Positions 9,779 through 61,515 of a DNA stretch of 64,000 bases are shown piece after piece. How positions within the stretch are numbered: position 1 is the first letter of the stretch; every line of letters begins with the position of its first letter. Below the pieces are notes generated by a model that was not told where the DNA came from, made no database searches, and worked only from the letters and a program-made list of their open reading frames with translations. Source of the DNA: Macrostomum lignano. Taxonomy: Eukaryota. Location of the stretch: contig NIVC01000434.1 in the NCBI GenBank assembly GCA_002269645.1, positions 124,001-188,000 on the forward strand. The letters are read 5' to 3'. The translations under genes and the position numbers were made by a program.

Positions 9779-11189
9779 CCTGACGAGGTCTGATCAGTCG
9801 ACTTTTTGATAGTTTCACTAGCCACAACCAGCTACTGTAAAATTTTCAATCGTGAACGAAAAGCCACTGCTAAAAGCTACCATACTTGTTTTCCTATTAT
9901 TGCAATGTACCTTTTTCTGTGCTCGCTTCGCTGACCGCAGATGTACTGTTATATTGTCAGAAGGGTCGGCCAGGGACTCACAAATAAGCCGTCTCGACCA
10001 CGCCCTTGTTTCCCGATTTAGTCAGTTTCCAATAAGCTACTGAGTCAGTCCGTGCGTTATCAATGGATTTACCTGCGTCACGCTACCTGAATGACGTAAT
10101 TTAACTGTGTCTTCCTTTTACAGTTTTGCTCGTCGGTCAAATTTTCTGTAAGCATTATTACTAAAATGTGCACAAAATCTACGGCCGTATTTCTACCTAT
10201 ATGCCTATAGCTACCCCTTAGAACCCGCGCATGCCAGCTTAAGGACCGCACGCAGCAGTTTCTATAAAGGTACGATTACTTTCGATGTAGCTTTAATTAC
10301 TTCGAACGCTGAGGTTTTCACTTTTGTTTAAACGACGAATTCCTTAAAATTTGCGTTGTACTTTCAAATCGCTAATATTCATAGTCGGATAATAATTTTT
10401 GCCTTCAACATCCGCTTGTGAAGTCATGCAGAATGTGATTGCAGTCGCCTACCCATAATAATAGCTTAGATTCGTGCAGGTAACTCAATACCTGGCTCTG
10501 TAGTAGCTAGCTAGATTATCTACTCGTGACAGCGCTAAGTCCCCTTTTCACTAGCCTTCTATAGCTCTCCACTCTTCAAGTTAATTAGGCAGGTTTTGGC
10601 CGAGAGTCCCTCGGGTCTTCTTATTTTTGTCGTCCTTTGACAATTCGACTCTCGAACTAACAGGCTAATGAGACTCGCGCAGTCCATGCGCTTGTTTTAA
10701 TTAGCTAAAAGCTTATTTCGAAACTCTCCATTCGAACCTTCTTTTCTAGACTAAAAAGTACCACCCTAATATCGCTAAGGCTAAATCAAAGATGCATCGA
10801 GTTGCAAAGACTTCGGAAAATTTCGTTTGTATTTCTGCCAATACTTTTAGGTAATCTCGTCAATTTTTGTGAATGCTCAGCACAAAGTCAACTAAAAAAT
10901 AATTAATGCCTATTGTGAACCGGTCAGCCTGTCAGTTTTTGTTTATTAAAAGTCATTAAAAAATCGCCTTAAACTATTCATGGAGTCGAGCGGACAGGAT
11001 TCGTTCCGTATTAAACGCTTCGCTTTGCTAGGTCTTATGAATAATTTACCGACTATAAAATAAAGACTTTGCCACTGCTTTTTTGCGACCACAAACTCTT
11101 GCTTCTTAATTCTTGTGATCACAATCGTGTGTTTTCAGCACAGGATCAGCTGATATCTTTATTTCTAATAATAATTAACAATTGATTAC

Positions 11190-25101: not shown

Positions 25102-26999
25102 CTTTGAGTTTGTCAAGTATTATTATTAATAATTAATAGGTATTAACTTTAAGTCTTAACGCTAATAATACTGCCCTGCTGTAGATCAATACTATAAAGT
25201 GTTAGAAGCGGCAAAGAATAACCAGATAATTTTTTGTGACTTTGTAGGCGCAAATATTTTTTGATTTCTAAGAGTTAAAAATATTGCACTTTATACGGTG
25301 ATCAGAGTACTAACTACTGAATTCACCGGCACTTGGGTTCACCGGATTTTTAACTTTATTTTTAAGGCTTAAAAATATACATAATCGATAGCGCAAGTAA
25401 AACTAGAGATGCGCCTAGATTTTTGGCTCTGCGCGTTGCCCCTGGACATCAGGAGGGCGATTTTTGTTATTTTTTGGGGGTGAAACCGGCGGTGAACCCA
25501 ATAAATCCTTCCAGAGAGCTGAAAACCTGTTATGCAATATTTCAAAGCAAAATATAGGCAGATTTCGACGTGCGCATAAAATTTCAGCGTTGCGCGTTGC
25601 TCCTGAACTGCAGGAGAACGTTTTTTTGTTAAATTCCGGTGTTGAATGACTGCCGCTGAACTCCGCGGTGAACGAAATTAAGTGCGTTTCCCGAGTCGAA
25701 AAATAGTAAATTTTCCTATTAAAAAAGTTATCAAATTAAAGTTTTATCACTTTCATCAGCATTTTTGCACTCAATTTTGTGTTGACTGTTAAGCTATTTA
25801 TTTTAATGCAAAGCGAAAACATTAAAAAATATTTCGAACTGCGAGTCTTTATTGCGCAACGTGGCAGCAGGCAGTTACAGCGCACTTGCGCATAAAAAAT
25901 ACATTATATTTATACGCCGTGTGGTATTTTTGTGGCCATACTTAATAATGAAGCCTTTTATGCTGTTTTACTTCCTATATTTTTAGATTTATTTTTCAAT
26001 TACGTCTTGAAACATGCAGTCAAAGTGTTAATATCAGTATAGGCAATAAAATAAAATTGGCATTTCTTGGCTTGATGCTTTTTACAACTTGTTAAAACCT
26101 CTATTTTAATATTTCTTCTCTTCTAATAAGTCAAATTATAAACATAATATCTATTTAAGATTCCATAGTGCTTTTCCATTAAGTATAAATTCAATTATAT
26201 CAGGCAGGCACTTAGTATACTTTTATAAAATAATAACTATAACATGCAATAAAAATATTGACTATACTAGCCTATTTAATTACTTGTAATTTTATGTAAT
26301 ATTACTAGCCAATAAATATTTTTATATTTGATTTCATTGTAATTATAAAAAATTTAAAAAATTCTGTATATTTATAACATTGTTGACTCATAAAATTCTT
26401 TCTTGTTTTTTCTCCTAACCATAATTAATATTTCAAAAAATATACATCAAGAATTATTAATTTTTCTTGATTTGTAAATAAAAATATTACCCTGCAATTT
26501 TCAATATTTTTCATGTATTTTATGTAAAATGCGCAATTTCATGTGTTTTTTGTGTTTCCATCAGTTTAGCTTGGGCTAACTAGAAACTGCAGACTGACAG
26601 AATGCATTTCTTTCTCCGGGATATTGTTTCTTTCTAAGTTAAAGAGACCAATATGCTCATTAGGAGTAGCTTTATGCCCAGAAGCACAGTACGCACAATA
26701 AATTGTGTTTTTTGTGTTTCCATCAGTTTAGCCTGTTATTGGGCTTTCTAGAAACTGAAGACTGACAGAATGTATCCCTTTTTCAGGGATACTGTTTCTT
26801 TCCAAGTTAAAGAGACGAATCTGCTTCATACCAACGTCTTAATCGCTAAAATCACAGTAACACAATAAATTCGGAACCCACTTTCCCTTTTTACTCGCGT
26901 TTATTAACGATGCGTACACTGTTTTCGAAGCGCAAGGTCCTCTACCTGCGAATGCTGCTTTTTGTCGGCGTTTGAGTTGAGTTGATGTTCAAGAAGCGA

Positions 27000-28690: not shown

Positions 28691-29275
28691 GATGAGATGA
28701 GACGCTTCGCTTCGCTGAAGGCCATCTCGCATTTTGCGTCCCAGTTCCATGGCGTGTCCTTGCGCAGGAGCGCTGTTAGCGGCTCGGCGACGTGAGACAG
28801 GTTCTTGATGTAGAACTGGAAGAACTTTGCAAAGCCAAGGAATGAGGCTAACTTTGCCGTATTGGTGGGTGCCTTAAGTCCCGATACGGACTCGGTGTGC
28901 GACTGGAGAGGTTGAATTCCCGCTGCGCTGACGCGGTGTCCAACGAACTCGATCTCCGACGCCTTGAAGGTTGCACTTCTTGAGGTTGACGGTTACTCGA
29001 TGCTGCAGCAGCTTGTCCAGTACCTGAAGTACGCGACTTTCGTGCTCAGCTTCAGTACCGGCGTGAACGGCGATGTCGTCTTGATAGTGAACGACGCCTC
29101 TGATGCCTTGGAGGATCTTGCCGACGAGCTTCTGGAAGGCCGCCGGATCCGAGCTGATGCCGAACGGCATGCGTCTGAAACGGTAGAGGCCGAATTCGGT
29201 GTGGAAGCAGGTCAGATTCTTGGCGTCATCGTGCAGAGGCAGCTGTAGATACGACTGGTTGAGGTTGATTCGTGA
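28690..29275 (-). pseudogene. Ty3/gypsy reverse transcriptase fragment inside the foldback element
   Basis: FSRINLNQSYLQL..TCFHTEFGLYRFRRMPFGISS.PAAFQ..VHYQDDIAV, then after a frameshift FVGHRVSA.GI.P..FLGFAKFF..WNWD.KCEMAF. Confidence 0.9.
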
Positions 29276-31844
29276 GAAAAACTTCGAATTGTAAACCTCA
29301 AATATATTACTAATTAAAAATTTTAAAACACGTTTCCATTCTTTTGAATTAGAATAGCAGGTATGTTCAGAGCTAAAATAATTCTGGTTTAACAATTTTA
29401 TGCCTTACTTGATTTCATTCACAACTCTCGCTGCACTACTCATAGTAAAGTAGTAAAGATGTATCAATGTTGTTGCAACAACATTGCCAATTTTGACAAT
29501 GGCACGACAAAAAATTTCTTGTGACAACATTGATGTCAACAATTCAGCAACACGAGGAATATCCGTAAAAAGGAATACATTCTGTCAGTCTTCAGTTTCT
29601 AGAAAGCCCAATAACAGGCTAAACTGATGGAAACACAAAAAACACAATTTATTGTGCGTACTGTGCTTCTGGGCATAAAGCTACTCCTAATGAGCATATT
29701 GGTCTCCTTAACTTAGAAAGAAGCAATATCCCGGAGAAAGAAATGCATTCTGTCAGTCTGCAGTTTCTAGATAGCCCAATAACAGGCTAAACTGATGGAA
29801 ACACAAAAAACACAATTTATTGTGCGTACTGTGCTTCTGGGCATAAAGCTACTCCTAATGAGCATATTGGTCTCTTTAACTTAGAAAGAAACAATATCCC
29901 GGAGAAAGAAATGCATTCTGTCAGTCTGCAGTTTCTAGTTAGCCCAAGCTAAACTGATGGAAACACAAAAAACACATGAAATTGCGCATTTTACATAAAA
30001 TACATGAAAAATATTGAAAATTGCAGGGTAATATTTTTATTTACAAATCAAGAAAAATTAATAATTCTTGATGTATATTTTTTGAAATATTAATTATGGT
30101 TAGGAGAAAAAACAAGAAAGAATTTTATGAGTCAACAATGTTATAAATATACAGAATTTTTTAAATTTTTTATAATTACAATGAAATCAAATATAAAAAT
30201 ATTTATTGGCTAGTAATATTACATAAAATTACAAGTAATTAAATAGGCTAGTATAGTCAATATTTTTATTGCATGTTATAGTTATTATTTTATAAAAGTA
30301 TACTAAGTGCCTGCCTGATATAATTGAATTTATACTTAATGGAAAAGCACTATGGAATCTTAAATAGATATTATGTTTATAATTTGACTTATTAGAAGAG
30401 AAGAAATATTAAAATAGAGGTTTTAACAAGTTGTAAAAAGCATCAAGCCAAGAAATGCCAATTTTATTTTATTGCCTATACTGATATTAACACTTTGACT
30501 GCATGTTTCAAGACGTAATTGAAAAATAAATCTAAAAATATAGGAAGTAAAACAGCATAAAAGGCTTCATTATTAAGTATGGCCACAAAAATACCACACG
30601 GCGTATAAATATAATGTATTTTTTATGCGCAAGTGCGCTGTAACTGCCTGCTGCCACGTTGCGCAATAAAGACTCGCAGTTCGAAATATTTTTTAATGTT
30701 TTCGCTTTGCATTAAAATAAATAGCTTAACAGTCAACACAAAATTGAGTGCAAAAATGCTGATGAAAGTGATAAAACTTTAATTTGATAACTTTTTTAAT
30801 AGGAAAATTTACTATTTTTCGACTCGGGAAACGCACTTAATTTCGTTCACCGCGGAGTTCAGCGGCAGTCATTCAACACCGGAATTTAACAAAAAAACGT
30901 TCTCCTGCAGTTCAGGAGCAACGCGCAACGCTGAAATTTTATGCGCACGTCGAAATCTGCCTATATTTTGCTTTGAAATATTGCATAACAGGTTTTCAGC
31001 TCTCTGGAAGGATTTATTGGGTTCACCGCCGGTTTCACCCCCAAAAAATAACAAAAATCGCCCTCCTGATGTCCAGGGGCAACGCGCAGAGCCAAAAATC
31101 TAGGCGCATCTCTAGTTTTACTTGCGCTATCGATTATGTATATTTTTAAGCCTTAAAAATAAAGTTAAAAATCCGGTGAACCCAAGTGCCGGTGAATTCA
31201 GTAGTTAGTGATCAGAGTTCCATTAGTTTTCCATGAAACTTTAAAATTTAAAAACAAAGTTCCTGATTAACAAAAAAGTAAACTCTATAAAACATAAGGA
31301 GGTACTCAAGTCGTAGTTTTGTTAAATAAAGATTAAAACTAAACATTTAAAGTAAAACTGTATCTTTTTATTAGGGTCAAACACCTTGTTCGAAAGTGTT
31401 TTTTATTTAAAAGCAAAAAGGTTTCCCTGAAACTGAAACTTGAAAGTGTGTATTTTAACTCTCATCTAAGCTTTGCTGGCCAATTGACGTGGGCCTCGGG
31501 CTGGATGTCTGAACCTGAATATCTACTCATTGTGCTGGTCGTTTTTGTGACTTGTATCTCAAAAATGCGCGACCTGTATGTTCTTAATTGCATAGGTTTT
31601 TGGAAAATGTCAATATTTGTTTGTTAAATTATTTTGAGTAATTGACTACACAAAATTAATCTATGGACTATATTTTAAATAAGAATGACTAATTTTAAGG
31701 GACTTAAGCCTGATTAGCACTATCTTTATGCTTCAAAACTTGTTATAACGTACCTGATCTCTTAAAGCTTCTAGCAGTCTATGGCCAATAAGCAATACAG
31801 CCAAAATTATGGTTATAATAATTTGGTAGGGGACTACACAAAAC

Positions 31845-36600: not shown

Positions 36601-36921
36601 GCTTAAGTTGGTTTGGAGATTAGACATTAGCATTGGCATGGACAAAAACAGCAATAATGCAAAAACATTATGAAAAATGTTTTTTGTTTTTACTTTATAT
36701 TCCTATATACTAAAAATTATTTGTCTCTAGATATCTAGGTATGTGGTTAATTTTAGAAAAAAAATGGCTCAAGCAATTTTTGCAAAACTTGTACTTAAAC
36801 ATTAAACTAATTTAAAATTTATGATATAAAACTGACATAATTGAGTACTTCTAAGCCATATACCAATAACTTCAATAATAAATTGTTTTGTAATCAAGTG
36901 AATTGGTTTCCATTAACCATC

Positions 36922-38307
36922 ATGTATGGACAGCAGCCATATTCAATGGGCAGCCACAGTTCACCAATGCCACCTGCTACCAGCCAATCCAGTGGTGGAG
37001 GCGGTAGCACCAGCTTTGACTCCAATGTTCTGGGACTCTTGCGCAATATGGAACGCGAAGATTTGCAGAAGTTAAATGATCAAACAATTGAAACTTTAAT
37101 CTCTGACGATACTGATGTAAGTTTTTCTAGATTTGTTTTTCATGAATAGTGTGTGCAATTCAAATATATAATAGGTAAACGGCGGGAGTAACTATAGCTT
37201 TATTACATTATGATATTGCCTCGTCATCTCATTTGTGCTTCAAGAGCTGTTTAGACAAAAAAATTTTTTATTTTGTAAGTTTTATTTTTTTAAATAATAA
37301 GAAACAAGACGATGTTCATCTTGATTTTGCTTTACTAGCAGTAGAAAAAAATAGAAAGTCTTCATTTTTCAAATTTCAAAAAAAAATCAAATGATTTTTC
37401 TACTTACAGTAAAAAAAGTGGGAAAATACTTAGGAAAGCAAACTATAATGACCCATGAGGTACATGTGTACATGTCTAAGTCAGATAGTGTACATGTCTA
37501 AGTCAGAGTGTACATGTCTAAGTCAGAGAGTGTACATGTCTAAGTCAGAGAGTGTACATGTCTGATGATTCCAAAGTCAGATCCACTGTACACCCTTTGC
37601 GAGCGTGTTTATGAGCGCTGTGCTCAGGAGTCAGCGGATTGGGCAGAATTGCCTCATTGCTGGTCAGGGAACGATTTTGCTGGAGGCCTTTGTGACTAAA
37701 AATGAACTATTTACACCCCGGTTGGCTCCAAGAATCATTGGCAATTATTTTAAATTTGTTTTTACTCCAGTTAAACAAACTGCAAGAGGTCAAGCTAACC
37801 GAGAGCGCCACAAATCGCAGCCTGGCTGAGCACAATCTCAGCCAGCAGTCCCGAATCGAACAGGGTCGCCGAGCTCTGATCTCGGCGCATAAAGAGGCCG
37901 CAGATCTGGGCCGTCATCACCGAGAGCTCACTAGCCGCCTATCCGGCGGTCAGCAGGGCGAATCCCTTGAGACCCTGCACTCGCTGCTTCAATCTGCCTG
38001 CTTAGAAGCCGAAGAGAAAAGCGATTCAATTCTGGACCAGTTTCAATCCAAGCGAATGTCCCTGCCGGAGTTTATTAATAAATACACGGAAGCCAGGGCG
38101 CTGTATCACACTAGGCGGGCTAAAACTGACAAAGTTACCGAGATTTCTAATCAAAGAATTGTTCAGGCCTCGTCAGCTTATCGGACTACCAACATGCCTC
38201 CTGCAATGCCGCCTGTGGGACCGTTCGGTCCGCCGCCCGTGCCGCCGCAGCATGCCGCCATGCCGCCATATTATTATCCGCCTAATTACTACGGCGGTCG
38301 ACCTTGA
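36922..38307 (+). CDS. VPS37: ESCRT-I subunit VPS37 (Mod(r) domain), 2 exons, ~243 aa
   Basis: Exons 36922-37116 and 37771-38307, phase 0; NRSLAEHNL..., EAEEKSDSILDQF..FINKYTEARALYHTRRAKTDK; Pro/Tyr-rich tail. Confidence 0.82.
37465..37565. repeat. Short 20-22-bp tandem repeat (GTGTACATGTCTAAGTCAGA) in the VPS37 intron
   Basis: About five units visible. Confidence 0.8.
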
Positions 38308-39346
38308 ATTTAATTGGTTTGTTATTATCTGCTGGCTGCTGTTGGCTTGTGCGGTGTCTGCGGCAGCTCATGACTGCAGTCTGCAGAGACCGCATATTTT
38401 TTTACCGTTGAGATTCTAGTTCTGTCTTGCGAGTATGACATTCTCCCCTTCAGCCTCCCAGCTCCTTTGAAGTTTGAATTCCTAATTCCGGTTATTTCCC
38501 TTCAATTCATCTTTCCGACTCTTAGAAATGTAATTTACCATTTCCTTCTTCTTTCCGGGAAAGTTAGACGACCTTTCCCGTGAATCTGAAATTCTCTCTA
38601 GCTTTAATTTCTTTTGGATATTAAAAAAACAATACATCATATCTCAAACTTTTTAGATCGTCTGACGGAAAGATTGCAACAATGGTCAGAGACAAACAGT
38701 GATTTTGATTACTCAATTAACTCAATTATTGTGTATTCATAATGAAGTGCTGCAAAGTGCTTTGTTTCATCTCTCTTAGTAATGGAGCCAATGTGAATTT
38801 TTTATTTTTGTAAATACTTTCCTAAGAGTTCAACCCTATGAAAATTAAATATCGTTCATATATCTACTGCACGTGAAGGATGCTATAATTCTTTTTTAAA
38901 AGTACTCGATTTGCACTAAGCTATTTATTACCCCGACTGCACTCTGTGTTGCTACTGTTCAATTCAGTTTCTATTCATGGTTGTCCAATGCTGTTGAGCT
39001 TTGACTTTTAATTGAAACCATAGAAAGAGAAACTATTGGCTAATTATTACTTCATAGTACACTTCAAGGCTATGCAAATAAAAGCTTTGTTAAAAATGAG
39101 TGCTATCTGCTTTCAGTGTCGATTTTATTTACGTTGTAGTATCAATGTAGCACAAAATTTCCCCAGTTCTAAATATTCATTCGTAGCGCTCAGATCTTGA
39201 TTGCTTAGCCACTTCCAGTCCCGCAATTCCTCAATATCCTTACCACCCTCCAAGATTCTCATTGCTAGACAGATCCCAATACTTGCTCACCTATCAGGCG
39301 AATCACTACATATTAACCGGCATCGTCACGGCGCATTGAATTTCAG

Positions 39347-41848
39347 TATTTTCGTTTGTTAAAAAATCTGCTTGCTGCTGCTTCTAAAAGCAGACAGCGG
39401 CTAAACGCATTTTCTGGTCCGTCTCAGCTTCGAGTCTTGTCATCGTCAGCTACTAAGGAGAATCAAGCCCAAGTTATCCGTTGCCATAGCGACAAGAAAC
39501 GCGAAGATAAAAGCCGCTCGAATGGCGGCACTTTTGCCGCTGTAACCGCCTCAGTTGCTATGGCGACTGTTGCCGTTAACAGAGATAAAAATAATGAAGA
39601 AAAAGATAAGCCTGAAAATGCGAATTTGCCCACTGTCACATTAGAAGAGGTTGCAAAGCACAACAGCTTGCAGACAGGTGTCTGGGTTATTTATCAGGTA
39701 ATTGCTGCTTGGTGAGCACATGATTATCGATAAAAACACAAGTGATTTTCAGTGGCGAGTACAGCTGCTTATCAAAGGCGATTAATAATGTTGTGAGTAC
39801 GAATGATTATCAATGTCAAGCAAAAACGATCAATTGCGAGCACATATGATTTGTAAATAGTGAGTGCAAATTATTATCAATAGCGAGCGCAAATGATTGT
39901 CAATGGCGAGCGCAAATGATTGTCGATGGCGAGCAAAAGTTGATTATGAGTATAAATGGTGAGTACAGATGATTATCAATGATGAGCACAGGATATGATC
40001 AATGGTAAGCACAGGCTACTTCACTCCAACTCCAGAACACAGTGTACGACGTGACCAACTTCGTAGACAGCCACCCAGGCGGCGAGAAGATACTACTAGC
40101 CGCTGGCAAAGACGTCGAACCATTCTGGGATCTGTACGCGGTGCACAAGTCTCCGCACGTGCTGAGCATCCTAGCTGAGTACGCCATCGCTCGTCTGACA
40201 GCAGCAGATGCTCTTGAGCTTCAGCGTCGCAAAGCTTCCGAACAATCAGACGACGGTGGCAAGTTTGCCAACGAGCCAAAACGTTCACCTCTGCTGGTGC
40301 CAATTAATAAACGACCTTACAATGCGATGTCACCGCCAGAAATTCTCATGGACCACTACTACACTCCCAATGCCATTCATTTTGTTAGAAACCATCTGCC
40401 AGTGCCTAAGCTACCCGAGGACGCCAATTCTTACAGGGTCAAACTGGATCTGAAGGATCCAACTAACGAAGAGAAAGTCAATCGCAGTCTAAACGTTACT
40501 GTTGAGCAATTGCGCAACGATTTTCCTCGAGTTAGTTACGACGTTACGCTTGCATGCGCCGGCAATAGGCGCAACGAGATGGCGCAATGGCGTCAAGCTA
40601 GAGGTCTGGAATGGCGCCAAACTGCGGTGTCGAACGCGCGCTGGACTGGCGCGCCTCTGCATTTGGTGCTGAAGAAGCTATTTGGTTTAGACTTGGATAA
40701 GGCTAGGAAACTGGGCTACAGGCATGTGCAGTTTGAAGGCATGGATGGGGACAGCATTACAGGCGACTTTTATGGCGCTTCGGTGCCTGTGGAAGTGGCG
40801 CTTGATGAGTCGCGTGGTCTCCTGCTGGCGTACGAGATGAACGGAGAGGCGATACCAGCCGATCATGGGTATCCGCTGAGGGTTATTGTGCCTGGTTAGT
40901 GGCTTTATTGGCTTCTGTGTCTATGTTAGTTCACTGCTCTGTGTTAAGCGTGAGAACCGTTTCTAAACTGTACAAGCTAGATTCTAGAGAGTTGTCTAAA
41001 ATCTACCCATAAGATTCTCGAAATATTCTTAGAATCGTCTCTAATTCGCCCTGGGAATCACATTTGAGACACTTACCCTAGAATTTCCAATAAACCATAC
41101 TGAAAACAATCTTTTCCACTACTTAATATTTCTACAAAATAAACTAATTTAAAATTGTCTCTGAAAGCCGACCCTGAGAAATGCTAAAAATCATTCTGAC
41201 GAGATAAAAACCGTATGAAACACCAAAGCGTAAAATCCATCAAACAAAAAACTCGGCATCGCAGGCGCCATCGGAGCCCGCAGCGTCAAGTGGCTTTGCC
41301 GCATCGCTCTCAGCCGGCAAGAGAGCTCCAGCTTCTGGCTGCGTAGCGACTACAAGACGTTTCAACCCTCCTTGTACACACCAACTGTTGAAGATTTCGT
41401 TCGGGCGCCTGCTCAACTTTATTGGCCAGTGGTTAGCGCCATCTGTTGGCCGCCGGATGGTCACGTGATCAGGGACGGCTACGGCGCTGACGAAGACGAA
41501 GTTGTGCAAATCCGTGGCTACGCGTTCAGCGGCGCCGGAGCTGGCGTAGTCCGAGTGGAAGTGACCACGGACGACGGCAATACGTGGCAATTGGCCCAGT
41601 GGTGTAACTTGGATGATGCTCCTGATGATGTTGATGATTCTTTGCATCAACCGTTCGGTCAGCGCTGGGCTTGGCGCCTTTGGGAGGCGACGGTTCCAGC
41701 GCCGAAGCCTGGCCAAAGTGTCACCATAGCTTGCAAAGCTGTTGACGATAATGGGAATCAACAGCCGGAACGATGGAGGTCGGTGTGGAATGCTCGGGGT
41801 CTGCTTGGCAACGCGTGGCATCGAGTCACCGTGAAGAGAGACCAGTAG
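39347..41848 (+). CDS. SUOX: Sulfite oxidase copy 1 (targeting leader + cytochrome b5 + Mo-cofactor + dimerisation domains), ~597 aa plus an unlocated initiator
   Basis: Exons 39347-39697, 40036-40894, 41265-41848; HPGG, FVRNH, LACAGNRR, DHGYPLRVIVPG|AIGARSVKWL, DYK, WNARG; frame intact; exon 1 starts at an acceptor with no ATG. Confidence 0.93.
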
Positions 41849-41910
41849 ATCGCGACTGGGGAGTGTCTCATCCGCATGGGTTTTTCCGCTACGTGCGTAC
41901 CCCGTAAGAA

Positions 41911-41950
41911 CCGTAAAGACGATCTCTTGTTGTGAGGACCCAATACTTAT
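41911..41950 (+). ncRNA. Degenerate spliced-leader-like sequence (pseudogene or variant)
   Basis: CCGTAAAGACGATCTCTTGTTGTGAGGACCCAAT matches 28/34 of the Macrostomum SL exon as I recall it (CCGTAAAGACGGTCTCTTACTGCGAAGACTCAAT...); terminal ATG, donor and Sm site not seen. The reference is from memory. Confidence 0.5.
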
Positions 41951-41952
41951 AG

Positions 41953-43708
<1,756 letters not shown>

Positions 43709-45729
43709 TATAGATCAGTTTATACATCGCAATTGAAAGCAATAGTTCCAGCGGTATTGTGAGCTAAAATCAAATACAAAGAATCTATCAACAACGCGAT
43801 TAGTCTTATTGTTAGCAGCCAAAGATTATGGCATTGCTAAGCACTCTAAGTTGTTCGTTGCTTTGAAAATAAGCTGTAGTGGTTCCCTTGCTAGAGCGTC
43901 ATGACGCCTGCTATCTGTGACCACAGTAATGCAGCATCAGCTACTACAGCAGTATAGCAAGGCGTAACCTTACTATACTGATACCTGTACAACCCACACA
44001 GAGGCACCTAGGAATGTCGCAACACCGCAAGTTTCAGTGGAAAATCTATTACACCAAAGTGACTCCCGATCATCCTACTAACTGTATCTCAGGTACGTGT
44101 AAGACTATACGCCTGTCGATTTCAGCTAGCTACAGTAATCCAAGTCGGGCACTTGTACCGAGTCACTAAAGTAATAACTTATCATAATATACCAGCTCTG
44201 CTTATCATCTGATAGAACCATGCATCAAATCACTCCTTAGTTTCGTTTCTTTCGGATGGATGCTCATTCTGCCAGAGCATAGAAAACTCTTTCTAGTCAA
44301 AGCGCCCCTTTCATACTCTTCACATACTCTTTCTCATAGCCCTTCATATTCTTCATACAGAGGATGAGAAAGAAGTATCAAGGCGCCAAGGTTAGGGGAA
44401 TAGGTTGTATGAGGCTGCAAATGGGAGTTGTCTTGACTGGAAAAACTCCTTTTGGCTTTGGAAACCGGAGCGATGTCATGGTGATGGTGAAGAAGACTGA
44501 AAAGTGCTCATCAGCAACTCCTAGGGCACTGTGGTAAGCACACTGTGGCAGTCACTTTTTACAGGGTGGGTGTATGAAAACTACATTTTTAAATGAAGCT
44601 GCTATTTCAGACTATATACAAACATAATGAGATCATAAAATTGCTATATAAATGTGTTGCTCTAAGACTGTAAGTGTTGTCCCTTGATCTTGATGCAAAT
44701 AAAAGCATTGCAGCGTGCTTTGATAAACATAAGAGGTTTTTGCTTCTCAGTGTCAAAAAAAGTAATCTTTTTCTTCATTATTGATTATTTTCTTGATGTT
44801 TAAGTGTCGAAATAGCAGATCCCAGAACCCCCAGATCCTCAGTTGTTAGGCCACTTCCAACATTGATTCAGAGCACAGGAATTTCCCGCAGATGATTTGC
44901 CCGCAACGCTGAACTAACAGTAATGTAAAATAGATTTAGCTAATTGCCGACCAAGGCAAGCTTTTTTACTGGGTTAAGAAAAGAGACACTTTTATTACCA
45001 GCGAGGCTTTATTATCATGGGGTGAGAGACTTTAGCTAAATACTAATAAAACGCGAAAAAAGGCTAGGTTTCTCTGTTAATAGTGGGCTGACGGGTTAGA
45101 AGTCAAATCTCGCTGTAGTTGAAGCAATGAAAGGGACAGAAAAGGGTGTGGACTTTGGACTCTGCAGCTCCGCGTGGCAGTCTTTCCGGGGAGGGTGTAA
45201 TTGTACAACTTTGCATGGATAGTTAGCGCTGGCTGAGCTCATGACATTAGACAAGGACGAAAAGCCAAAACTCTTGACCTTACATTACTGACCTAGTTTT
45301 TTTAAAGTTATACTATGTAGCAATGATAAGGAGCTGTCAGATTGACAAAAACTCCAATTCAAACTTGAAACACTAGTGTATGACGTACGAGTACAGCAAA
45401 ACAGGTGCATTTTTGTGTATGAAGAATAATATCGTGATAAAGCCAGGTATAGTTAGATTTAAGAGCTTTTATCTAATCCCTGGATTTTACTAATTTCTAC
45501 TTTGCACTATAAGAAAAAGCATTGCGGGCAAATCTCAGAGGTCAATTCTCATTGCCTCCAACATTCCAGATCCTCCGTTATTGGGCATCCCCCCAGATCT
45601 TCAGTTGCTAAGCCACCCATATCCCTCAGTTGCTAGGCCACCCTTTCAGATCATCAGTAGCTAGGCAGATGCCACAATACTTGCTCCTAGCAGACCACCT
45701 TCTACACTTGAACCGGCATTGAATTTCAG

Positions 45730-48103
45730 TATTTGCGTCAGCTAAAGAATCTCACTGGGACAGCGGTATGCTGTCGCCAGCTGCTTGCTGCTGCTTCTAA
45801 AAGCAGCCAGCGTCTAAACGCATTTTCTGGTCCGTCTCAGCTTCGAGTCTTGTCATCTTCAGTTACTAGGGAGAATCAAGCCCAGGTTAACCGTTGCCAT
45901 GGAGACAAGGAACGCCAAGAAAAAAGCGGCTCAAATGGCGGCACTTTTGCTGCTGTAGCCGCCACTGCTGCCTCTGTTGCTATGGCGACTGTTGCGGTTA
46001 ACAAAGATACTAATAATGATGAAAAAGATACCTCTGGAAATGCAGCGAATTTGCCCAGTGTCACATTAGAAGAGGTTGCAAAGCACAACAGCTTGCAGAC
46101 AGGTGTCTGGGTTATTTATCAGGTAATTGCTGCTTGGTAAGATAATTACTATACTATACAGATACTTGAGTACTCGTACAGTTCCATCTTTTAAGTACAC
46201 GAAATAATTAATGGTGAGCACAGATGATTATCAATGGTGAGCACAGATAGTGATGAATGGTAAGCACAGGCTACTTCACTCCAACTCCAGAACACAGTGT
46301 ACGACGTGACCAACTTCGTAGACAGCCACCCAGGCGGCGAGAAGATACTACTAGCCGCTGGCAAAGACGTCGAACCATTCTGGGATCTGTACGCGGTGCA
46401 CAAGTCTCCGCACGTGCTGAGCATCCTAGCTGAGTACGCCATCGCCCGTCTGACAGCAGCAGATGCTCTTGAGCTTCAGCGTCGCAAAGCTTCCGAACAA
46501 TCAGACGACGGTGGCAAGTTTGCCAACGAGCCAAAACGTTCACCTCTGCTGGTGCCAATTAATAAACGACCTTACAATGCGATGTCACCGCCAGAAATTC
46601 TCATGGACCACTACTACACTCCCAATGCCATTCATTTTGTTAGAAACCATCTGCCAGTGCCTAAGCTACCCGAGGACGCCAATTCCCACAGGGTCAAACT
46701 GGATCTGAAGGATCCAACTAACGAAGAGAAAGTCAATCGCAGTCTAAACGTTACTGTTGAGCAATTGCGCAACGATTTTCCTCGAGTTAGTTACGACGTT
46801 ACGCTTGCATGCGCCGGCAATAGGCGCAACGAGATGGCGCAATGGCGTCAAGCTAGAGGTCTGGAATGGCGCCAAACTGCGGTGTCGAACGCGCGCTGGA
46901 CTGGCGCGCCTCTGCATTTGGTGCTGAAGAAGCTATTTGGTTTAGACTTGGATAAGGCTAGGAAACTGGGCTACAGGCATGTGCAGTTTGAAGGCATGGA
47001 TGGGGACAGCATTACAGGCGACTTTTATGGCGCTTCGGTGCCTGTGGAAGTGGCGCTTGATGAGTCGCGTGGTCTCCTGCTGGCGTACGAGATGAACGGA
47101 GAGGCGATACCAGCTGATCATGGGTATCCGCTGAGGGTTATTGTGCCTGGTTAGTGGCTTTATTGGCTTCTGTGTCTATGATAGTTCACTGCTCTGTGTT
47201 AAGCGTGAGAACCGTTTCTAAACTGTACAAGCTAGATTCTAGAGAGTTGTCTAAAATCTACCCATAAGATTCTCGAAATATTCTTAGAATCGTCTCTAAT
47301 TCGCCCTGGGAATCACATTTGAGACACTTACCCTAGAATTTCCAATAAACCATACTGAAAACAATCTTTTCCACTACTTAATATTTCTACAAAATAAACT
47401 AATTTAAAATTGTCTCTGAAAGCCGACCCTGAGAAATGCTAAAAATCATTCTGACGAGATAAAAACCGTATAAAACACCAAAGCGTAAAATCCATCAAAC
47501 AAAAAACTCGGCATCGCAGGCGCCATCGGAGCCCGCAGCGTCAAGTGGCTTTGCCGCATCGCTCTCAGCCGGCAAGAGAGCTCCAGCTTCTGGCTGCGTA
47601 GCGACTACAAGACGTTTCAACCCTCCTTGTACACACCAACTGTTGAAGATTTCGTTCGGGCGCCTGCTCAACTTTATTGGCCAGTGGTTAGCGCAATCTG
47701 TTGGCCGCCAGATGGTCACGTGATCAGGGACGGCTACGGCGCCGACGAAGACGAAGTTGTGCAAATCCGTGGCTACGCGTTCAGCGGCGCCGGAGCTGGT
47801 GTAGTCCGAGTGGAAGTGACCACGGACGACGGCAATACGTGGCAATTGGCCCAGTGGTGTAACTTGGATGATGCTCCTGATGATGTAGATGATTCTTTGC
47901 ATCAACCGTTCGGTCAGCGCTGGGCTTGGCGCCTTTGGGAGGCGACGGTTCCAGCGCCGAAGCCTGGCCAAAGTGTCACCATAGCTTGCAAAGCTGTTAA
48001 CGATAATGGGAATCAACAGCCGGAACGATGGAGCTCGGTGTGGAATGCTCGGGGTCTGCTTGGCAACGCGTGGCATCGAGTCACCGTGAAGAGAGGCCAG
48101 TAG
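45730..48103 (+). CDS. SUOX: Sulfite oxidase copy 2 (tandem paralog)
   Basis: Exons 45730-46122, 46291-47149, 47520-48103; exons 2-3 lie exactly 6255 bp from copy 1; same motifs, frame intact; exon 1 starts at an acceptor with no ATG. Confidence 0.93.
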
Positions 48104-49140: not shown

Positions 49141-49879
49141 CAGTTTACGGCCCTTACCAATTATTTCTCACACATCATTTATTCAGATAAAAGCCCCAAA
49201 TTTAGTCATTGTAATTAAGTTTTGTTTGACAATTAAATATCATTGTTTTCTTATCTTTATTGTTTCTAGACTTTATTAACTTCGCTTTCATTCCAATACC
49301 TCGCTTTATGTATTGAAAGTTTAGCTTGTTCTATTCATTGCACAGATTTTTTGGTTACTGACAGAATCTCGTGTGTTTTACTATGAAAGCTTTTTTCTAA
49401 TCTAAAACCATTATTTAACCCCTTTTATTGCTCAAAATCCTACCATCCTAAAATAGCTATCGCTATGATATTTGATCAAATCATGCATGCGTTGATCGCT
49501 TCTTCAATATGAAAATAAATTTAAACTCAACTAAATAAACTGCAGATTCAGCCTTTAAGATCAAGTATTAATAATTACGTATACAACGATAAATGTATAG
49601 ATAGTCTGGCTTTGCCTAATTATAGGTAACAAGCTGTTAAAACCCGCGGATTTTGAACCCGGGGAATTCCAATCCCCGGAACTATTTTTGCATATTGAGA
49701 TTAAACTCAAACAAAAACATTTATTAGTTGGGATAGAGTTAAACATAAAAATAGAGTACATTCGTGTAAAATTAGGATTTGAGGCAAACATTGATATTGT
49801 TGGCTGGGGTGCTGCGCAGAATGTCAGGAAAACTCTGGCCTCTACCTCTGCCTCTCCCTATTTCCATTGCATCCTTTGA

Positions 49880-50309
49880 AACTTCTATCTTCTCTTCTGT
49901 TTTCTCACTTCTCTCTTGTCTCTTGTCTCTTCTCTCTCCTCTCATCTCTTCTTTCTTTTCTCCTCTGTCCCCTCTTCTTTTGTCTCTTCCCTCTATTCGT
50001 TTCTCTCTCCTTTCCTCTCTTCTCTCTCGTCTCTGCTCTCTCATCTCTCCTTTCTCCTCTTTTATCTCTTCTCATTTCTCTCTGCTCTCTCCTCTCTCTT
50101 CTCTCTCTACTCTCTACTCTCTCTTCCCTCTCCTCTCCTCTCTTCTCACTCATTACATTACCCTCTCTCAACACTTCCCTCATCTCTCCTCTCTCCTTTC
50201 TCTTCTCTTCTCTCCACTCTTTCCTCTCATCTCTTCTATCGTCTCTTTTCTCACCTCTCTTCTCTCTCATCTTTGCTCTCTTATCTTTTCTCTCTTATCT
50301 CTTCTCATC

Positions 50310-50357
<48 letters not shown>

Positions 50358-51420
50358 TCTCTGCTCTCTCCTGTCTCATCTCTCTTCTCTCTAATCTCTC
50401 CCCTCTTTCCTTTCATCTCTTGTCCTTCCCCTCTTTCCCCTGTCTTCTCGATTCCCTCCCTCCCCTCCTCTCTCTCTTCACTCACTTCTCTCTCCTTTTG
50501 TATCACCTCTCATCTCTTATTTCTTATCTCTCCTCTTTCCTCTGTCATCTGTCATCTTTACTCTCTTATACTCGTATGCTCTCTCACCTCTCTTCTTTGT
50601 ACTCTTCTCTTTCCCCTCTTTTGACTCCTCTCTTTCCTTTCTCCTTTTTCCTTTCTCCTCTTCTCTTCTCTTCTCTTCTCTCCCCTCTTCTATACTCTCT
50701 CCCTCTCTTGTCTTCTCTCTTTTCTCTCACTCTCCTCTCTCGTCTCTTATATCGTCTGTTCACTCTCATTCCCCTCTCTCTTCTGTCATCTCTACTCTCC
50801 TCTCTACTGTGCACTCTTTTCTTTCCCCTCTTCTGACTCCTCTCTTTCCTTACTCCTCTCTTCTCTTCCCTCTTCTATACTCTCTCCCCTCTATTCTCTT
50901 TTCTCGTCTCTCCGCACTCTGCTCTCTCTTCCTTCATCTCTCATCTCTACTCTACTCTCTCATATTTCCTTTCATCTTACTCATCTCTACAATCTCATAT
51001 CTTTCCTCTCTCCTCCTCTTCCCTTTACTCTATCATCTCTCCTTTGTCCTCTCTTCTTTCTCAACTCTCTCTCATCTCTATCTTCTCTCTTCTCACTCGT
51101 CTCTCCCCCTCTTATCTCCTCTCCTCTATCCTTTCTAATCCCCCCTCTCGATACTCTCATCTCTTTGTTCTCTCATCTCACTCTTCTCTACTCTCCTCTC
51201 TCATCGATCCTCTGTCTCATCTCTCCCCTCTTCTCTCTCCATCTTCTCACCTCTACTATTTCCTCTTCCTTCTCTCTCCCCTCCTCTTGCTTCTTTGTCC
51301 CATATTCTCTGCTCTCTCCTCAACCTCCTCGTACGTCTCTCCTGTTATCTTCTATCTTTTCTTTTATCCCCTCTCGCCCCTCCTCCCTTTCTAATAGTCT
51401 ATTTCTTTTCACTCTCATCT
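49880..51420. repeat. 1.5-kb CT-rich polypyrimidine low-complexity tract
   Basis: Strongly pyrimidine-rich on +, includes a (CT)n run; the Leu/Ser ORFs are artefacts. Confidence 0.95.
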
Positions 51421-53009: not shown

Positions 53010-54440
53010 TCACACCAGCTCTTGACCTTTGTCTTCGAGCAATTTGTGTCTCGTGCCCTCGCCATTGCCGCCTCCACTCAGAGCCGCTGAGCTCTGAACA
53101 TTGTCGATATTGTCGTCCACAGCTTCATCTTTGACGGCGGCAGCGTCATGGGAGTTCCCATCAACTTGATGCTCTAACTGCTGCTGCCGTTGTTGTTGTT
53201 GTTGGTTTCGTTGACGTAGGTGCCGACCGAGTACCACTGCTCCAGCAATGAGGCAGATTCCGCCAACTACAGCTGCTGCGGAGCCGAGGCCCAGTGGCTC
53301 GAGGTCGCTACGGTCGCGGACTAGCAGTTGGCGGACTGCGATTGTGTTTGTGATGGGTGCGCGATTGTTGATGTTAATATAGAGGGGAAAGGGGTTTGAG
53401 AGACTGGCCTGGGGTGGAGAGGGGTTTGAGAGAGGCCTGGAAAGGAGTGGGGTTTGAGAGCCTGGCCTGAGGAGGGGTGGGGTTTGAAAGACTGGGGCTG
53501 GGGAAGGGTGTAGGGGGTTGGAGAGACTGGTCTGGGGAGGGTTGGGGTTGGAGAGACTGGCCTGGGGAGGGGGGTGTAGGAGACAGGCCTGGAGAGGGGT
53601 GGAGTTGAGAGACTGCCTGGATAAAAGTGTGTGGGGGGTTAAGAGACTGGCCTGGGGAGGGGTGTAGGGGGTTGGAGAGACTGCCCTGGGGAGGGTTGGG
53701 GTTTGAGAGACTGGTCTGGGGGGGGGGTTGGAGAGACTGGCCTGGGGAGGGTGTAGGGGGTTGGAGAGACTGGCCTGGGGAGGGGTGTAGGGGGTTGGAG
53801 ACTGGCCTGGGGAGGGTTGGGGTTGGAGAGACTGGCCTGGGGAGGGGTGTAGGGGGTTGGAGAGACTGGCCTGGGGAGGGGTGTAGGGGGTTGGAGACTG
53901 GCCTGGGGAGGGTTGGGGTTGGAGAGACTGCCCTGGGGAGGGGTGGGGTTTGAGAGACTGGCCTGGGGAGAGGTTTGAGAGACTTGCTTTGGGAGGGATG
54001 GTGGTTTGAGAGACTCCTCGGCTGGAGTGGTCCGTTTTAAAAGACGTGTCGTGGGAGAGACATAAATTCCAAATCCTACACAGACCTGGCTCGGGCTCCT
54101 CTCCTCTGCAACGGGGCTCGCGGGCGCAGATATCAAATCTGGCGGCCCTCTGCTCGGCAGTCTCGGACACTACCTGGTGAGCAGGAGTTGTCGGTGCAGC
54201 TGCAATTGATGAAGCGTTCCAGTCTCCGGGCGGCATGATGGCAGCCAGATAATCTGCGCAGTTCGGACAGGCCCGGCACCGTCCGGTCGCTTCATCTCGA
54301 TAGCGACTCTCGCCGCAGTCGCCTGAGTCTCCGCGACTGCCTCCGCCGGCGCCGCTCACATGTTGGACTTGAATTGCTGCTAGTAGCAAGAGGGCCGCTG
54401 GCGGTAGCAGTAGGTGCAGTCGGCTTCCCATCTGGACCAT
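53010..54440 (-). CDS. TNF-receptor-like type I membrane protein with one Cys-rich domain (226 aa spliced; 476 aa if the intron is read through)
   Basis: Signal peptide; CGESRYRDEATGRCRACPNC...C..C resembles CRD1 of TROY/XEDAR/TACI-type receptors; exons 54440-54086 and 53335-53010 (phase 1); TM AAAVVGGICLIAGAVVL followed by RHLRQR; no death domain. Confidence 0.65.
   Translation of the reverse strand: MVQMGSRLHLLLPPAALLLLAAIQVQHVSGAGGGSRGDSGDCGESRYRDEATGRCRACPNCADYLAAIMPPGDWNASSIAAAPTTPAHQVVSETAEQRAARFDICAREPRCRGEEPEPGLCRIWNLCLSHDTSFKTDHSSRGVSQTTIPPKASLSNLSPGQSLKPHPSPGQSLQPQPSPGQSPTPYTPPQASLSNPLHPSPGQSLQPQPSPGQSPTPYTPPQASLSNPLHPPQASLSNPPPRPVSQTPTLPRAVSPTPYTPPQASLLTPHTLLSRQSLNSTPLQACLLHPPPQASLSNPNPPQTSLSNPLHPSPAPVFQTPPLLRPGSQTPLLSRPLSNPSPPQASLSNPFPLYININNRAPITNTIAVRQLLVRDRSDLEPLGLGSAAAVVGGICLIAGAVVLGRHLRQRNQQQQQRQQQLEHQVDGNSHDAAAVKDEAVDDNIDNVQSSAALSGGGNGEGTRHKLLEDKGQELV
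53385..54010. repeat. G-rich degenerate minisatellite in the TNFR-like intron
   Basis: GAGAGACTGGCCTGGGGAGGGTGTAGGGGGTT-type units. Confidence 0.85.
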
Positions 54441-55150: not shown

Positions 55151-55879
55151 ATCGATACTTACTTTTTCAAGTTGAAATTCTAATAAAATAGTGACAACTT
55201 GGTAAAAATTCAAAACAGCGCGAAGGTCTTGTCAGTTAAGCTGCCCTGTTGTGCATTTAGTTGTTTTTCCAAAATACAAATGCGCAGTATAATTCTGTAG
55301 CTATATACAGCGTATACGCAGCTGCAAGTACAACAGTTAAAGCAAAAGCTGTAGAGATCGAGAACAGAAAGGAAAGAAAAGTTTTGAGCCAATACCAGTA
55401 AGGGGAGGCGGTGGCAAGCCGCTGCTATGAGTTCGATCTATAACACTGGTGAGTGTACATTCAACCAATTGCTTCAGTTGTGCTGCCTTTAGCCATAAGA
55501 AACCCCTGTCTTTTTTCAAGCGCTTCGACTACTGAATGCAAATGGAGCTGAGGGCTTCTATATGCCTCTGCTACTGACCATTAAAGTGCATGCTTTTCTT
55601 TGCCTGCTATTCTGTGTATTGTTTTAACACTTCTTGTGGAGTACATGTGTACACTGTAGCTATGAATGCTAGTACATTTTAATTTGATAGATAGATGCTT
55701 CAATATACTTTGGTTGAAAAAGAACTTACCTTATCCTGAGTGCATTTTTAATGCATATCTGCTTCGGCCTTGGGCTTGCGCTTACTGCAGTCTGCAGTGA
55801 CACAAGCAGGAATTTAAATTTGAGGTTGTCCCTAATTGTCTTCTCTGCATCTTGATGGATCTCTGTTGTCCACGTTTGA

Positions 55880-56275
55880 GCCCCGTGTCTCATGGTTAGC
55901 GCCGCTGTCTCTTGGTTAGCGCCGCTGTCTCTTGGTCAGCGCCCCTGTCCCATGGTTAGCGCCGCTGTCTCATGGTCAGCGCCCCTGTCTCATGGTTAGC
56001 GCCGCTGTCTCATGGTCAGCGCCCCTGTCTCATGGTTAGCGCCGCTGTCTCTTGGTTAGCGCCGCTGTCTCTTGGTCAGCGCCCCTGTCCCATGGTTAGC
56101 GCCGCTGTCTCATGGTTAGCGCCGCTGTCTCATGGTTAGCGCCGCTGTCTCATGGTCAGCGCCCCTGTCTCATGGTTAGCGCCGCTGTCTCATGGTCAGC
56201 GCCCCTGTCTCATGGTTAGCGCCCCTGTCCCATGGTTAGCGCCGCTGTCTCTTGGTTAGCGCCCCTGTCTCTTGG
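55880..56275. repeat. 20-bp minisatellite (CATGGTTAGCGCCGCTGTCT)
   Basis: Tandem units; reverse complement resembles the 2.3-2.8 kb array. Confidence 0.92.
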
Positions 56276-56982
56276 CTCCCCTATCTCTTGCTTGGAGCAA
56301 GGACTACTCAACTATGACGGGAAACCACAAAAATTGTTATTGCTCTCGATAGGAGGCAGACCCTATGTTTATCTGCGGTGTCTTTCTTATAGTTCTATTG
56401 ATATTCATAAAGCTTATGTTGATGTAAAATAATAATGTTTCCCAAACCCCACCTCTCCCCCAGGCCATTCTCTAAGCTTCACCCTTCAACCACTCTCCAG
56501 GCCCCAGTCTCTCAGTGCATAGAATTCTAGATATTAGCCTTATCCAGGAAATTTAAAATGCAGGTTAATATCAATATTTAGAATTCTATGCTCATTCCGT
56601 CAGTGTTTACTGCATCCTCTGTTTACGTTGCCGGATGTGTTTATCACAGGTGACAACGGTATCTTGTTATTGAGAGTAAAGGATGCATAATCTGACAATT
56701 GTTAAAGCTGCTGGAAAGCGGAAGCAAAATTTAGCTCTGTAGGGAGAGGCAAGAGAAGTAAATACATTATCCAGATTTGACTAACTATACAACCAAAATT
56801 GATATAGTATACTACCCTTGCTTAAAGCTGTTCTTAGAATCGATTTAATTTAATTTCATAAACATCATCGCTAACTGCAGCCTATACTTGTATACATATA
56901 TAGCTCGTATGGGCATGAAATTCCGCACCAAAATTTGTCTAACAGGCAAGAATTCAAGGCAAATTTGTTCCTTTGCAACAGA

Positions 56983-61515
<4,533 letters not shown>

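Follow-up and report, generated by a model that had tools for sequence, protein, structure and literature searches.

Results

The window analysed here is a 64,000-nt stretch of the genome of the flatworm Macrostomum lignano (assembly Mlig_3_7, GCA_002269645.1; contig NIVC01000434.1, positions 124,001 to 188,000 of the forward strand), and all coordinates given below are positions within it unless a related locus is named. On its plus strand it carries two tandem genes, copy 1 and copy 2, whose predicted proteins identify both as genes for mitochondrial sulfite oxidase (SUOX). Pfam searches with the SUOX protein detected the Cyt-b5 (E-value 1e-16), Oxidored_molyb (4e-49) and Mo-co_dimer (4e-31) domains. 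The translation of 39347-41848 shares 92-93% identity with M. lignano proteins in GenBank and UniProt, in agreement with the flatworm origin supposed in the initial annotation, and the closest matches outside Macrostomum are annotated animal mitochondrial sulfite oxidases, with 45-49% identity. One GenBank entry from the same contig (PAA83074.1, BOX15_Mlig005869g1, labelled “partial”) corresponds exactly to copy 2, minus its first three residues, YLR.

Both copies consist of three exons with an intact open reading frame (ORF), and all their introns are of the GT-AG type. The first exon of copy 1 (39347-39697, phase 0, 117 codons) opens with TAT TTT CGT (YFRLLKNL) and contains a basic presequence, a hydrophobic sorting segment (GGTFAAVTASVAMATVAV) and the beginning of the cytochrome b5 domain. 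It is followed by exon 2 (40036-40894), with b5 and molybdopterin-binding domains, and by exon 3 (41265-41848), with the Mo-co dimerisation domain and a TAG stop. Copy 2 has the same organization, with exon 1 at 45730-46122 (phase 0, 131 codons, YLRQLKNL), exon 2 at 46291-47149 and exon 3 at 47520-48103, ending in TAG. Intron 1 of both copies contains a 23-bp minisatellite (about ATGATTATCAATGGTGAGCACAG), with 7-8 units at 39830-40014 and 3 units at 46203-46269.

The initial annotation of this DNA had noted that exon 1 of both copies starts in phase 0 directly after TTTCAG, with an ATG only further downstream, and this is confirmed: a genomic start codon is absent from both genes. In copy 1 the acceptor TTTCAG, a putative trans-splice site, lies at 39341-39346, so that the start of GenBank model Mlig004372g5 (39347) is the first base after it. 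An in-frame stop (TAA, 39314-39316) is found 11 codons before exon 1 with no ATG in between, and the earliest in-frame ATG is at 39560 (SVAMATVAV), codon 72 of the exon, preceded by 71 ATG-free codons. In copy 2 the putative trans-splice acceptor TTTCAG is at 45724-45729 and the in-frame stop (TGA, 45709-45711) is 7 codons before the exon, again with no ATG in between; the earliest in-frame ATG (45982) is codon 85, after 84 ATG-free codons.

We compared the window locus (L001, in which position 10001 equals window 39347) with two loci related to it elsewhere in Mlig_3_7, L002 (NIVC01001835.1) and L003 (NIVC01000164.1). L003 has the tandem pair as in the window, and L002 has a full copy 2 and only an exon-1 remnant of copy 1. 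The frame is open from the TAT codon onwards in all six exon-1 copies. The indels found before the internal Met among paralogues and related loci (30, 9, 3, and 3 nt) are every one a multiple of three, and pN/pS in this part ranges from 0.26 to 0.7. Because of these two features, the comparison of sequences indicates that the open frame ahead of the internal Met is more than chance and is constrained as coding.

The composition of this region resembles that of a targeting signal. With one Met added, residues 1-40 include 6-7 Arg/Lys and 0-1 Asp/Glu in both copies. An 18-residue hydrophobic stretch comes next (mean Eisenberg hydrophobicity 0.58-0.64), with charged residues at its flanks and the internal Met inside it. 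When aligned with fish and insect SUOX, the hydrophobic segment falls on LAGLLAGTGAVLAYGL of the fish protein. Counted from the added Met1, the b5 motif LPxxTxEEV lies at a distance of 95 residues in copy 1 and 109 in copy 2, against ca. 80-95 in fish and insect SUOX. The predicted N-terminus with one added Met fits the orthologues in length and layout, with a two-part targeting signal, and the mitochondrial-type presequence that had been proposed ahead of the first ATG is supported by its basic, nearly acid-free beginning and by the alignable hydrophobic segment. SUOX is an enzyme of the intermembrane space with a two-part presequence. Since the internal Met lies within the hydrophobic segment, a protein begun there would lose both parts of the signal.

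Another premise of the initial annotation, that flatworm spliced leaders (SLs) end in AUG, holds for this species: the published M. lignano SL is CGGTCTCTTACTGCGAAGACTCAATTTATTGCATG, 35 nt long, with the 3' end ...TTGCATG (PMC8629364), and its terminal ATG is the only ATG that it contains. At the trans-splice acceptors of M. lignano the top-ranking motif is [T/C]TNCAG, found at only 44% of the trans-splice sites (PMC8629364), and both SUOX acceptors match it. The modelled mRNA has no AUG ahead of that of the SL, which is in frame with the SUOX ORF. Between the SL AUG and the internal Met there are one out-of-frame AUG in copy 1 and three in copy 2, opening ORFs of 7-19 codons. A further AG is present at 45740-45741, 12 nt into exon 1 of copy 2 (gcgtcag/CTAAAG; here and below a slash marks the splice boundary), where the SL ATG would also fall in frame (M-LKNL...). 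The GenBank model of copy 2 starts 7-9 nt past the main acceptor, an exact match to neither the main acceptor nor this AG. No SL RNA gene or long SL match was found in the window. A 10-mer of the SL suffix is matched twice, at 26243 (minus strand) and 30266 (plus strand), and both matches were rejected as copies of an AT-rich inverted repeat. This repeat is at least 300 bp long and forms an inverted pair ca. 4 kb apart (26150-26350, minus; 30150-30500, plus), with the SL-suffix 10-mer inside it by chance and an RVT_1 ORF (28874-29395, minus) between its arms.

The annotation of Mlig_3_7 was built from RNA-seq, with the leader trimmed off the SL-containing reads before mapping and STAR run end-to-end, and the program TBONE then divided each transcription unit into genes, with cuts made solely at trans-splice or poly(A) signals (PMC5730564). 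At the three loci there are five RNA-guided GenBank models, starting at YLRQLKNL, RQLKNL, QLKNL, YFRLLKNL, and FRLLKNL, that is, 0-3 codons past the acceptor, and all of them are “5' partial.” Upstream of copy 1 lies a VPS37-like gene (Pfam Mod_r, 36841-38307, plus strand), whose GenBank model Mlig004372g4 starts at 36841. Neither an acceptor nor SL-like bases are found at this start and, because no AG precedes it, 36841 is probably the real transcription start of the gene. The copy-1 exon models Mlig004372g3 and g5 carry the same unit prefix as the VPS37-like models g1, g2, and g4, and the copy-1 exon was therefore cut from the VPS37 transcription unit. From the VPS37 stop to the copy-1 acceptor there are 1,039 nt, a gap that falls on the published (repeat-adjusted) cut-off of 1 kb for operons, and copy 1 is probably part of one operon-like unit begun at the VPS37-like gene. 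Model Mlig004372g5 (98 aa, 39347-44296) was rejected as an alternative splice form, being a transcript of an L002-type deletion haplotype projected onto the window scaffold, which creates a false, non-canonical 4.65-kb intron (39620-44274). In the older ML2 assembly, the UniProt models A0A1I8FXP4, A0A1I8GEZ7, and A0A1I8G0E6 are VPS37-SUOX chimeras of 709-919 aa; these fusions likely arose because SUOX has no ATG of its own and ab initio predictors had to seek one elsewhere. The gene identifiers had no match in the supplements of Wudarski 2017.

The junction itself was compared among the three loci. Copy 1 reads gaatttcag before TATTTTCG in the window and in L002, and gaatttcTg before the same bases in L003. 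Copy 2 reads gaatttcag before TATTTGCG in the window, gaatGCATg in L002 (changed bases within L002:9993-10000) and gaattCATg in L003 (changed bases within L003:9990-9994), so that the acceptor hexamer TTTCAG becomes TGCATG and TTCATG, respectively. All seven bases changed in the copy 2 of L002 and L003 are those of the SL 3' end, contiguous back from the junction, and the agreement extends to a non-coding base, the G at -5 in L002. With these changes the AG acceptor is lost and an ATG stands immediately before TAT. According to the Methods of the assembly paper, the Pilon polishing of Mlig_3_7 drew on Illumina DNA reads and on RNA-seq reads mapped by STAR. Reads beginning a few bases inside the SL, if aligned end-to-end, would therefore carry terminal mismatches that could outvote the genomic reads, and we believe that GCATG and CATG are most likely a polishing imprint of SL-junction reads and not real mutations. 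CATG is common to L002 and L003 despite window copy 2 being closest to the copy 2 of L003 (14 differences in exons 2-3, vs. 24-26 to L002), which favours a read-derived imprint over inheritance. Moreover, the ML2 model A0A1I8GEZ7 splices straight onto YLRQ, and this needs an AG there in at least one haplotype. Substitution clusters between the window and L002/L003 were also scanned in an unbiased way (ca. 50 kb aligned), and no other SL suffix of at least 5 bases was found in unique DNA. A cluster at 56910 was rejected as an SL imprint, as it is located in the indel-rich transcription-start region of a fibrinogen-like gene.

The history of the two copies can be followed in the same comparison. 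A 4.65-kb deletion in L002 (window 39620-44274 vs. L002:8535-8550) has removed the rest of copy 1, and the exon-1 remnant, presumably trans-spliced, encodes a 92-aa peptide. Copy 1 of L003 (L003:3777-6330) is a probable pseudogene, with a 5-nt deletion (window-equivalent 40839-40843) that falls in the conserved YEMNGE region of its second exon; the acceptor of this copy is CTG instead of CAG, a single A-to-T change that is ambiguous. In exons 2-3 the two window copies differ at only 12 of 1,443 nt, fewer than the 14-32 differences that separate either of them from its counterparts in L002 and L003. Their first exons show ca. 19% differences at synonymous sites plus three indels, and both exon-1 types are present in all three loci. 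The pattern suggests gene conversion of the 3' part, with two distinct presequences persisting. The upstream regions of the two copies are unrelated beyond ca. 200 nt. Between the copies, at 41963-43709 (plus strand), there is a 5'-truncated non-LTR retrotransposon fragment that includes the end of the reverse transcriptase, the RNase H and a (GTAA)n tail, flanked by a target-site duplication of 13 bp (TATAGATCAGTTT), and in L003 this site is empty. A different insertion of ca. 1.55 kb with GC-rich ends is present in L003 (6393-7948), adjoining repeated ACCGTAAAG.

Elsewhere in the window, no second case of an SL start was found among the dynamin-like, RRM, and BTB genes, each of which either carries an ATG itself or is represented by internal exons. 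The 5' end of the downstream gene (226 aa) shows no acceptor and no SL-like bases. There are also long tracts of simple or tandem repeats (49780-50840, 53400-54000, 55870-56260, 58440-58830, and 59700-60730). One of these is strongly CT-skewed and gives artificial Ser/Leu-rich ORFs, and the others have periods of ca. 20-36 bp and copy numbers that vary between related loci.

Discussion

We believe, with a probability of about 0.85, that the initiator Met of SUOX is not in the gene and that the AUG of the SL supplies the start for both copies. The observed basis is the structure of the genes with no genomic start codon, the conservation of the frame, the acceptor motif, the boundaries of the gene models and the SL-like bases in the related loci. 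From it we infer that the SL is joined at TTTCAG, that its AUG initiates translation and that mitochondria take up the product. The pre-mRNA would probably come from the unit begun at the upstream VPS37-like gene, and trans-splicing at TTTCAG/ would join it to the 35-nt SL ending in AUG. The resulting junctions would be ...UUGCAUG/UAU UUU CGU in copy 1 and ...UUGCAUG/UAU UUG CGU in copy 2, for which the expected SL-exon strings are TTATTGCATGTATTTTCGTTTG and TTATTGCATGTATTTGCGTCAG. The SL AUG would then initiate a protein opening with Met-Tyr-Phe/Leu-Arg, with a two-part presequence in which a basic matrix-targeting part is followed by a hydrophobic stop-transfer segment like that of other animal SUOX. 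That trans-splicing supplies Met1 and that targeting depends on it had been the central proposal of the initial annotation, and several indirect lines now support it (the motif, the partial models, the cutting of the transcription unit, the SL-like bases and the layout of the N-terminus). Its corollary, that a transcript that is not trans-spliced would give a leaderless enzyme, found no support, given the one or three out-of-frame AUGs before the internal Met, to which the outron adds more. Leaky scanning to a minor cytosolic form is possible.

There are several points that weigh against a start donated by the SL. The Kozak context of the SL AUG is weak (T at -3 and T at +4) vs. that of the internal Met (G at -3 and G at +4). 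The starts of the models scatter 0-9 nt from the acceptor, and the boundary is not base-exact in every one. A full-length copy 1 is absent from the annotation, the sole copy-1-type model (Mlig004372g5) coming from the deletion haplotype, and the copy-1 counterparts are degenerate in both other loci, truncated in L002 and frameshifted in L003. When both N-termini plus Met were used as queries against a collection of 5.8 billion proteins, no transcript-derived product was found, only two GenBank partial models. Lastly, upstream of copy 2 there is a phase-0 candidate ATG at 44652 with a consensus donor (/gtaagt) at 44670.

The alternative that survives best concerns the ATG found before TAT in the copy 2 of L002 and L003. 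If it belonged to the real genome, these copies would have their own start and would not be trans-spliced there, leaving the window copies alone in needing the SL. The assembly does read gaatgcATGTAT and gaattcATGTAT at these places, each with an in-frame TGA six codons upstream, and each of these genes is the sole intact SUOX gene at its own locus. We nevertheless consider this improbable. The perfect coincidence of the changed bases with the SL end extends to a non-coding position, the assembly was polished with RNA-seq, the shared CATG conflicts with the tree of the copies, and the gene models at L002 and L003 still begin after the ATG; to this can be added the AG that A0A1I8GEZ7 requires at that position. 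The two states are separated by GAATGCATGTATTTGCG and GAATTCATGTATTTGCG, with ATG before TAT, vs. GAATTTCAGTATTTGCG, which would mark a polishing artefact if it is the sole form in genomic reads. Should the ATG be real, which we think has a small chance, copies of one gene would show an SL-donated start vs. a genome-fixed one, with the acceptor lost and an SL-like GCATG in its place. Such a fixed start could stem from conversion by reverse-transcribed SL-mRNA, and the locus would then be a snapshot of the interconversion between SL-supplied and genome-encoded starts. Even so, Met-Tyr-Leu-Arg would still be marked as the true N-terminus. If GCATG and CATG are an imprint, they amount to read-level evidence for the SL/TAT junction of copy 2.

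Very unlikely, in our opinion, is that the ATG comes from a cis-spliced upstream exon, either ATG/gtcaga at 38682 for copy 1, a candidate already raised in the initial annotation, or the one running from 44652 to the donor at 44670 for copy 2. Both acceptors could serve cis-splicing, and flatworm acceptors are often common to cis- and trans-splicing (PMC12582326). However, such an exon appears in none of the five RNA-guided models. The 38682 candidate has a non-consensus donor and is in no gene model, and between the VPS37 stop and the copy-1 acceptor there is no phase-0 ATG exon ending at a consensus donor GT[AG]AG. The 44652 candidate has no other support. With unrelated upstream regions, each copy would need an exon of its own, and the bases resembling the SL in L002 and L003 suggest SL junctions. 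Equally implausible is that translation begins at the internal Met (39560 or 45982), the upstream frame being an untranslated leader and the product a cytosolic enzyme with no presequence: the Kozak context does favour that Met, but a frame of 71-84 codons is kept open in six of six copies with indels in multiples of three and pN/pS below 1, the region is laid out like SUOX presequences with the Met inside the hydrophobic sorting segment, and out-of-frame AUGs lie ahead of it.

A start donated by the SL would have consequences at two levels. As the borrowed Met would open the presequence, an essential detoxifying enzyme would need trans-splicing to be localised correctly. At the level of annotation, genes of this kind are mis-annotated, as illustrated by the five “5' partial” GenBank models and the chimeric UniProt proteins, and here the practical value may exceed the biological one. 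SL imprints at outron ends may be widespread in Mlig_3_7. If the phenomenon is general, the false genomic ATGs and lost AGs would distort the statistics of acceptor motifs and affect the design of promoters and 5' ends for M. lignano transgenesis.

In their domains the M. lignano copies resemble animal SUOX, with which they share the three Pfam domains and the basic and hydrophobic N-terminus. Unlike animal SUOX, the M. lignano gene has no start codon of its own and is a tandem duplicate with two exon-1 types and near-identical exons 2-3. Cheng et al. 2006 (J Biol Chem 281:733; cited in PMC9851317, PMC12582326, and PMC7653826) described the use of the terminal AUG of flatworm SLs as initiator methionine, and the resulting reading frames have been named “slORFs” (PMC9851317). 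According to the figures relayed in PMC9851317, in S. mansoni the SL AUG falls in frame for 28% of transcripts that are trans-spliced and more than 40 cDNAs need it. We also considered the S. mansoni phytochelatin synthase as a precedent and rejected it, as this gene is not trans-spliced. We found no paper in which SUOX, or any gene of M. lignano, is said to depend on the AUG of the SL. The flatworm slORFs and SUOX are alike in that the SL ends in AUG, splicing at the acceptor would put this AUG in phase with an ORF lacking a start, and conserved N-terminal residues need it. What differs from the earlier slORFs is the organism (a free-living macrostomorph), the gene, and the role of the Met, which would open a mitochondrial presequence. 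For Macrostomum annotation, the final ATG of the SL has been remarked upon as a start codon (Wiberg et al., 2023, PMC10468722), a general remark with neither a gene-level case nor a targeting consequence; the Mlig_3_7 pipeline trimmed this ATG, leaving SUOX-type models “partial.”

A second known system is the isoleucyl-tRNA synthetase of T. brucei, in which dual targeting is achieved by alternative trans-splicing (Rettig et al., 2012, PMC3273800). As would be the case for SUOX here, trans-splicing decides whether a mitochondrial presequence is translated. In T. brucei, however, the choice between two acceptors includes or excludes a genome-encoded AUG together with the presequence, whereas in M. 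lignano SUOX the SL would donate the AUG itself, and nothing points to a second, cytosolic isoform of this enzyme. A start at the SL AUG is already a known mechanism in flatworms, and SUOX would be a new example of it at the level of a gene, not a new mechanism.

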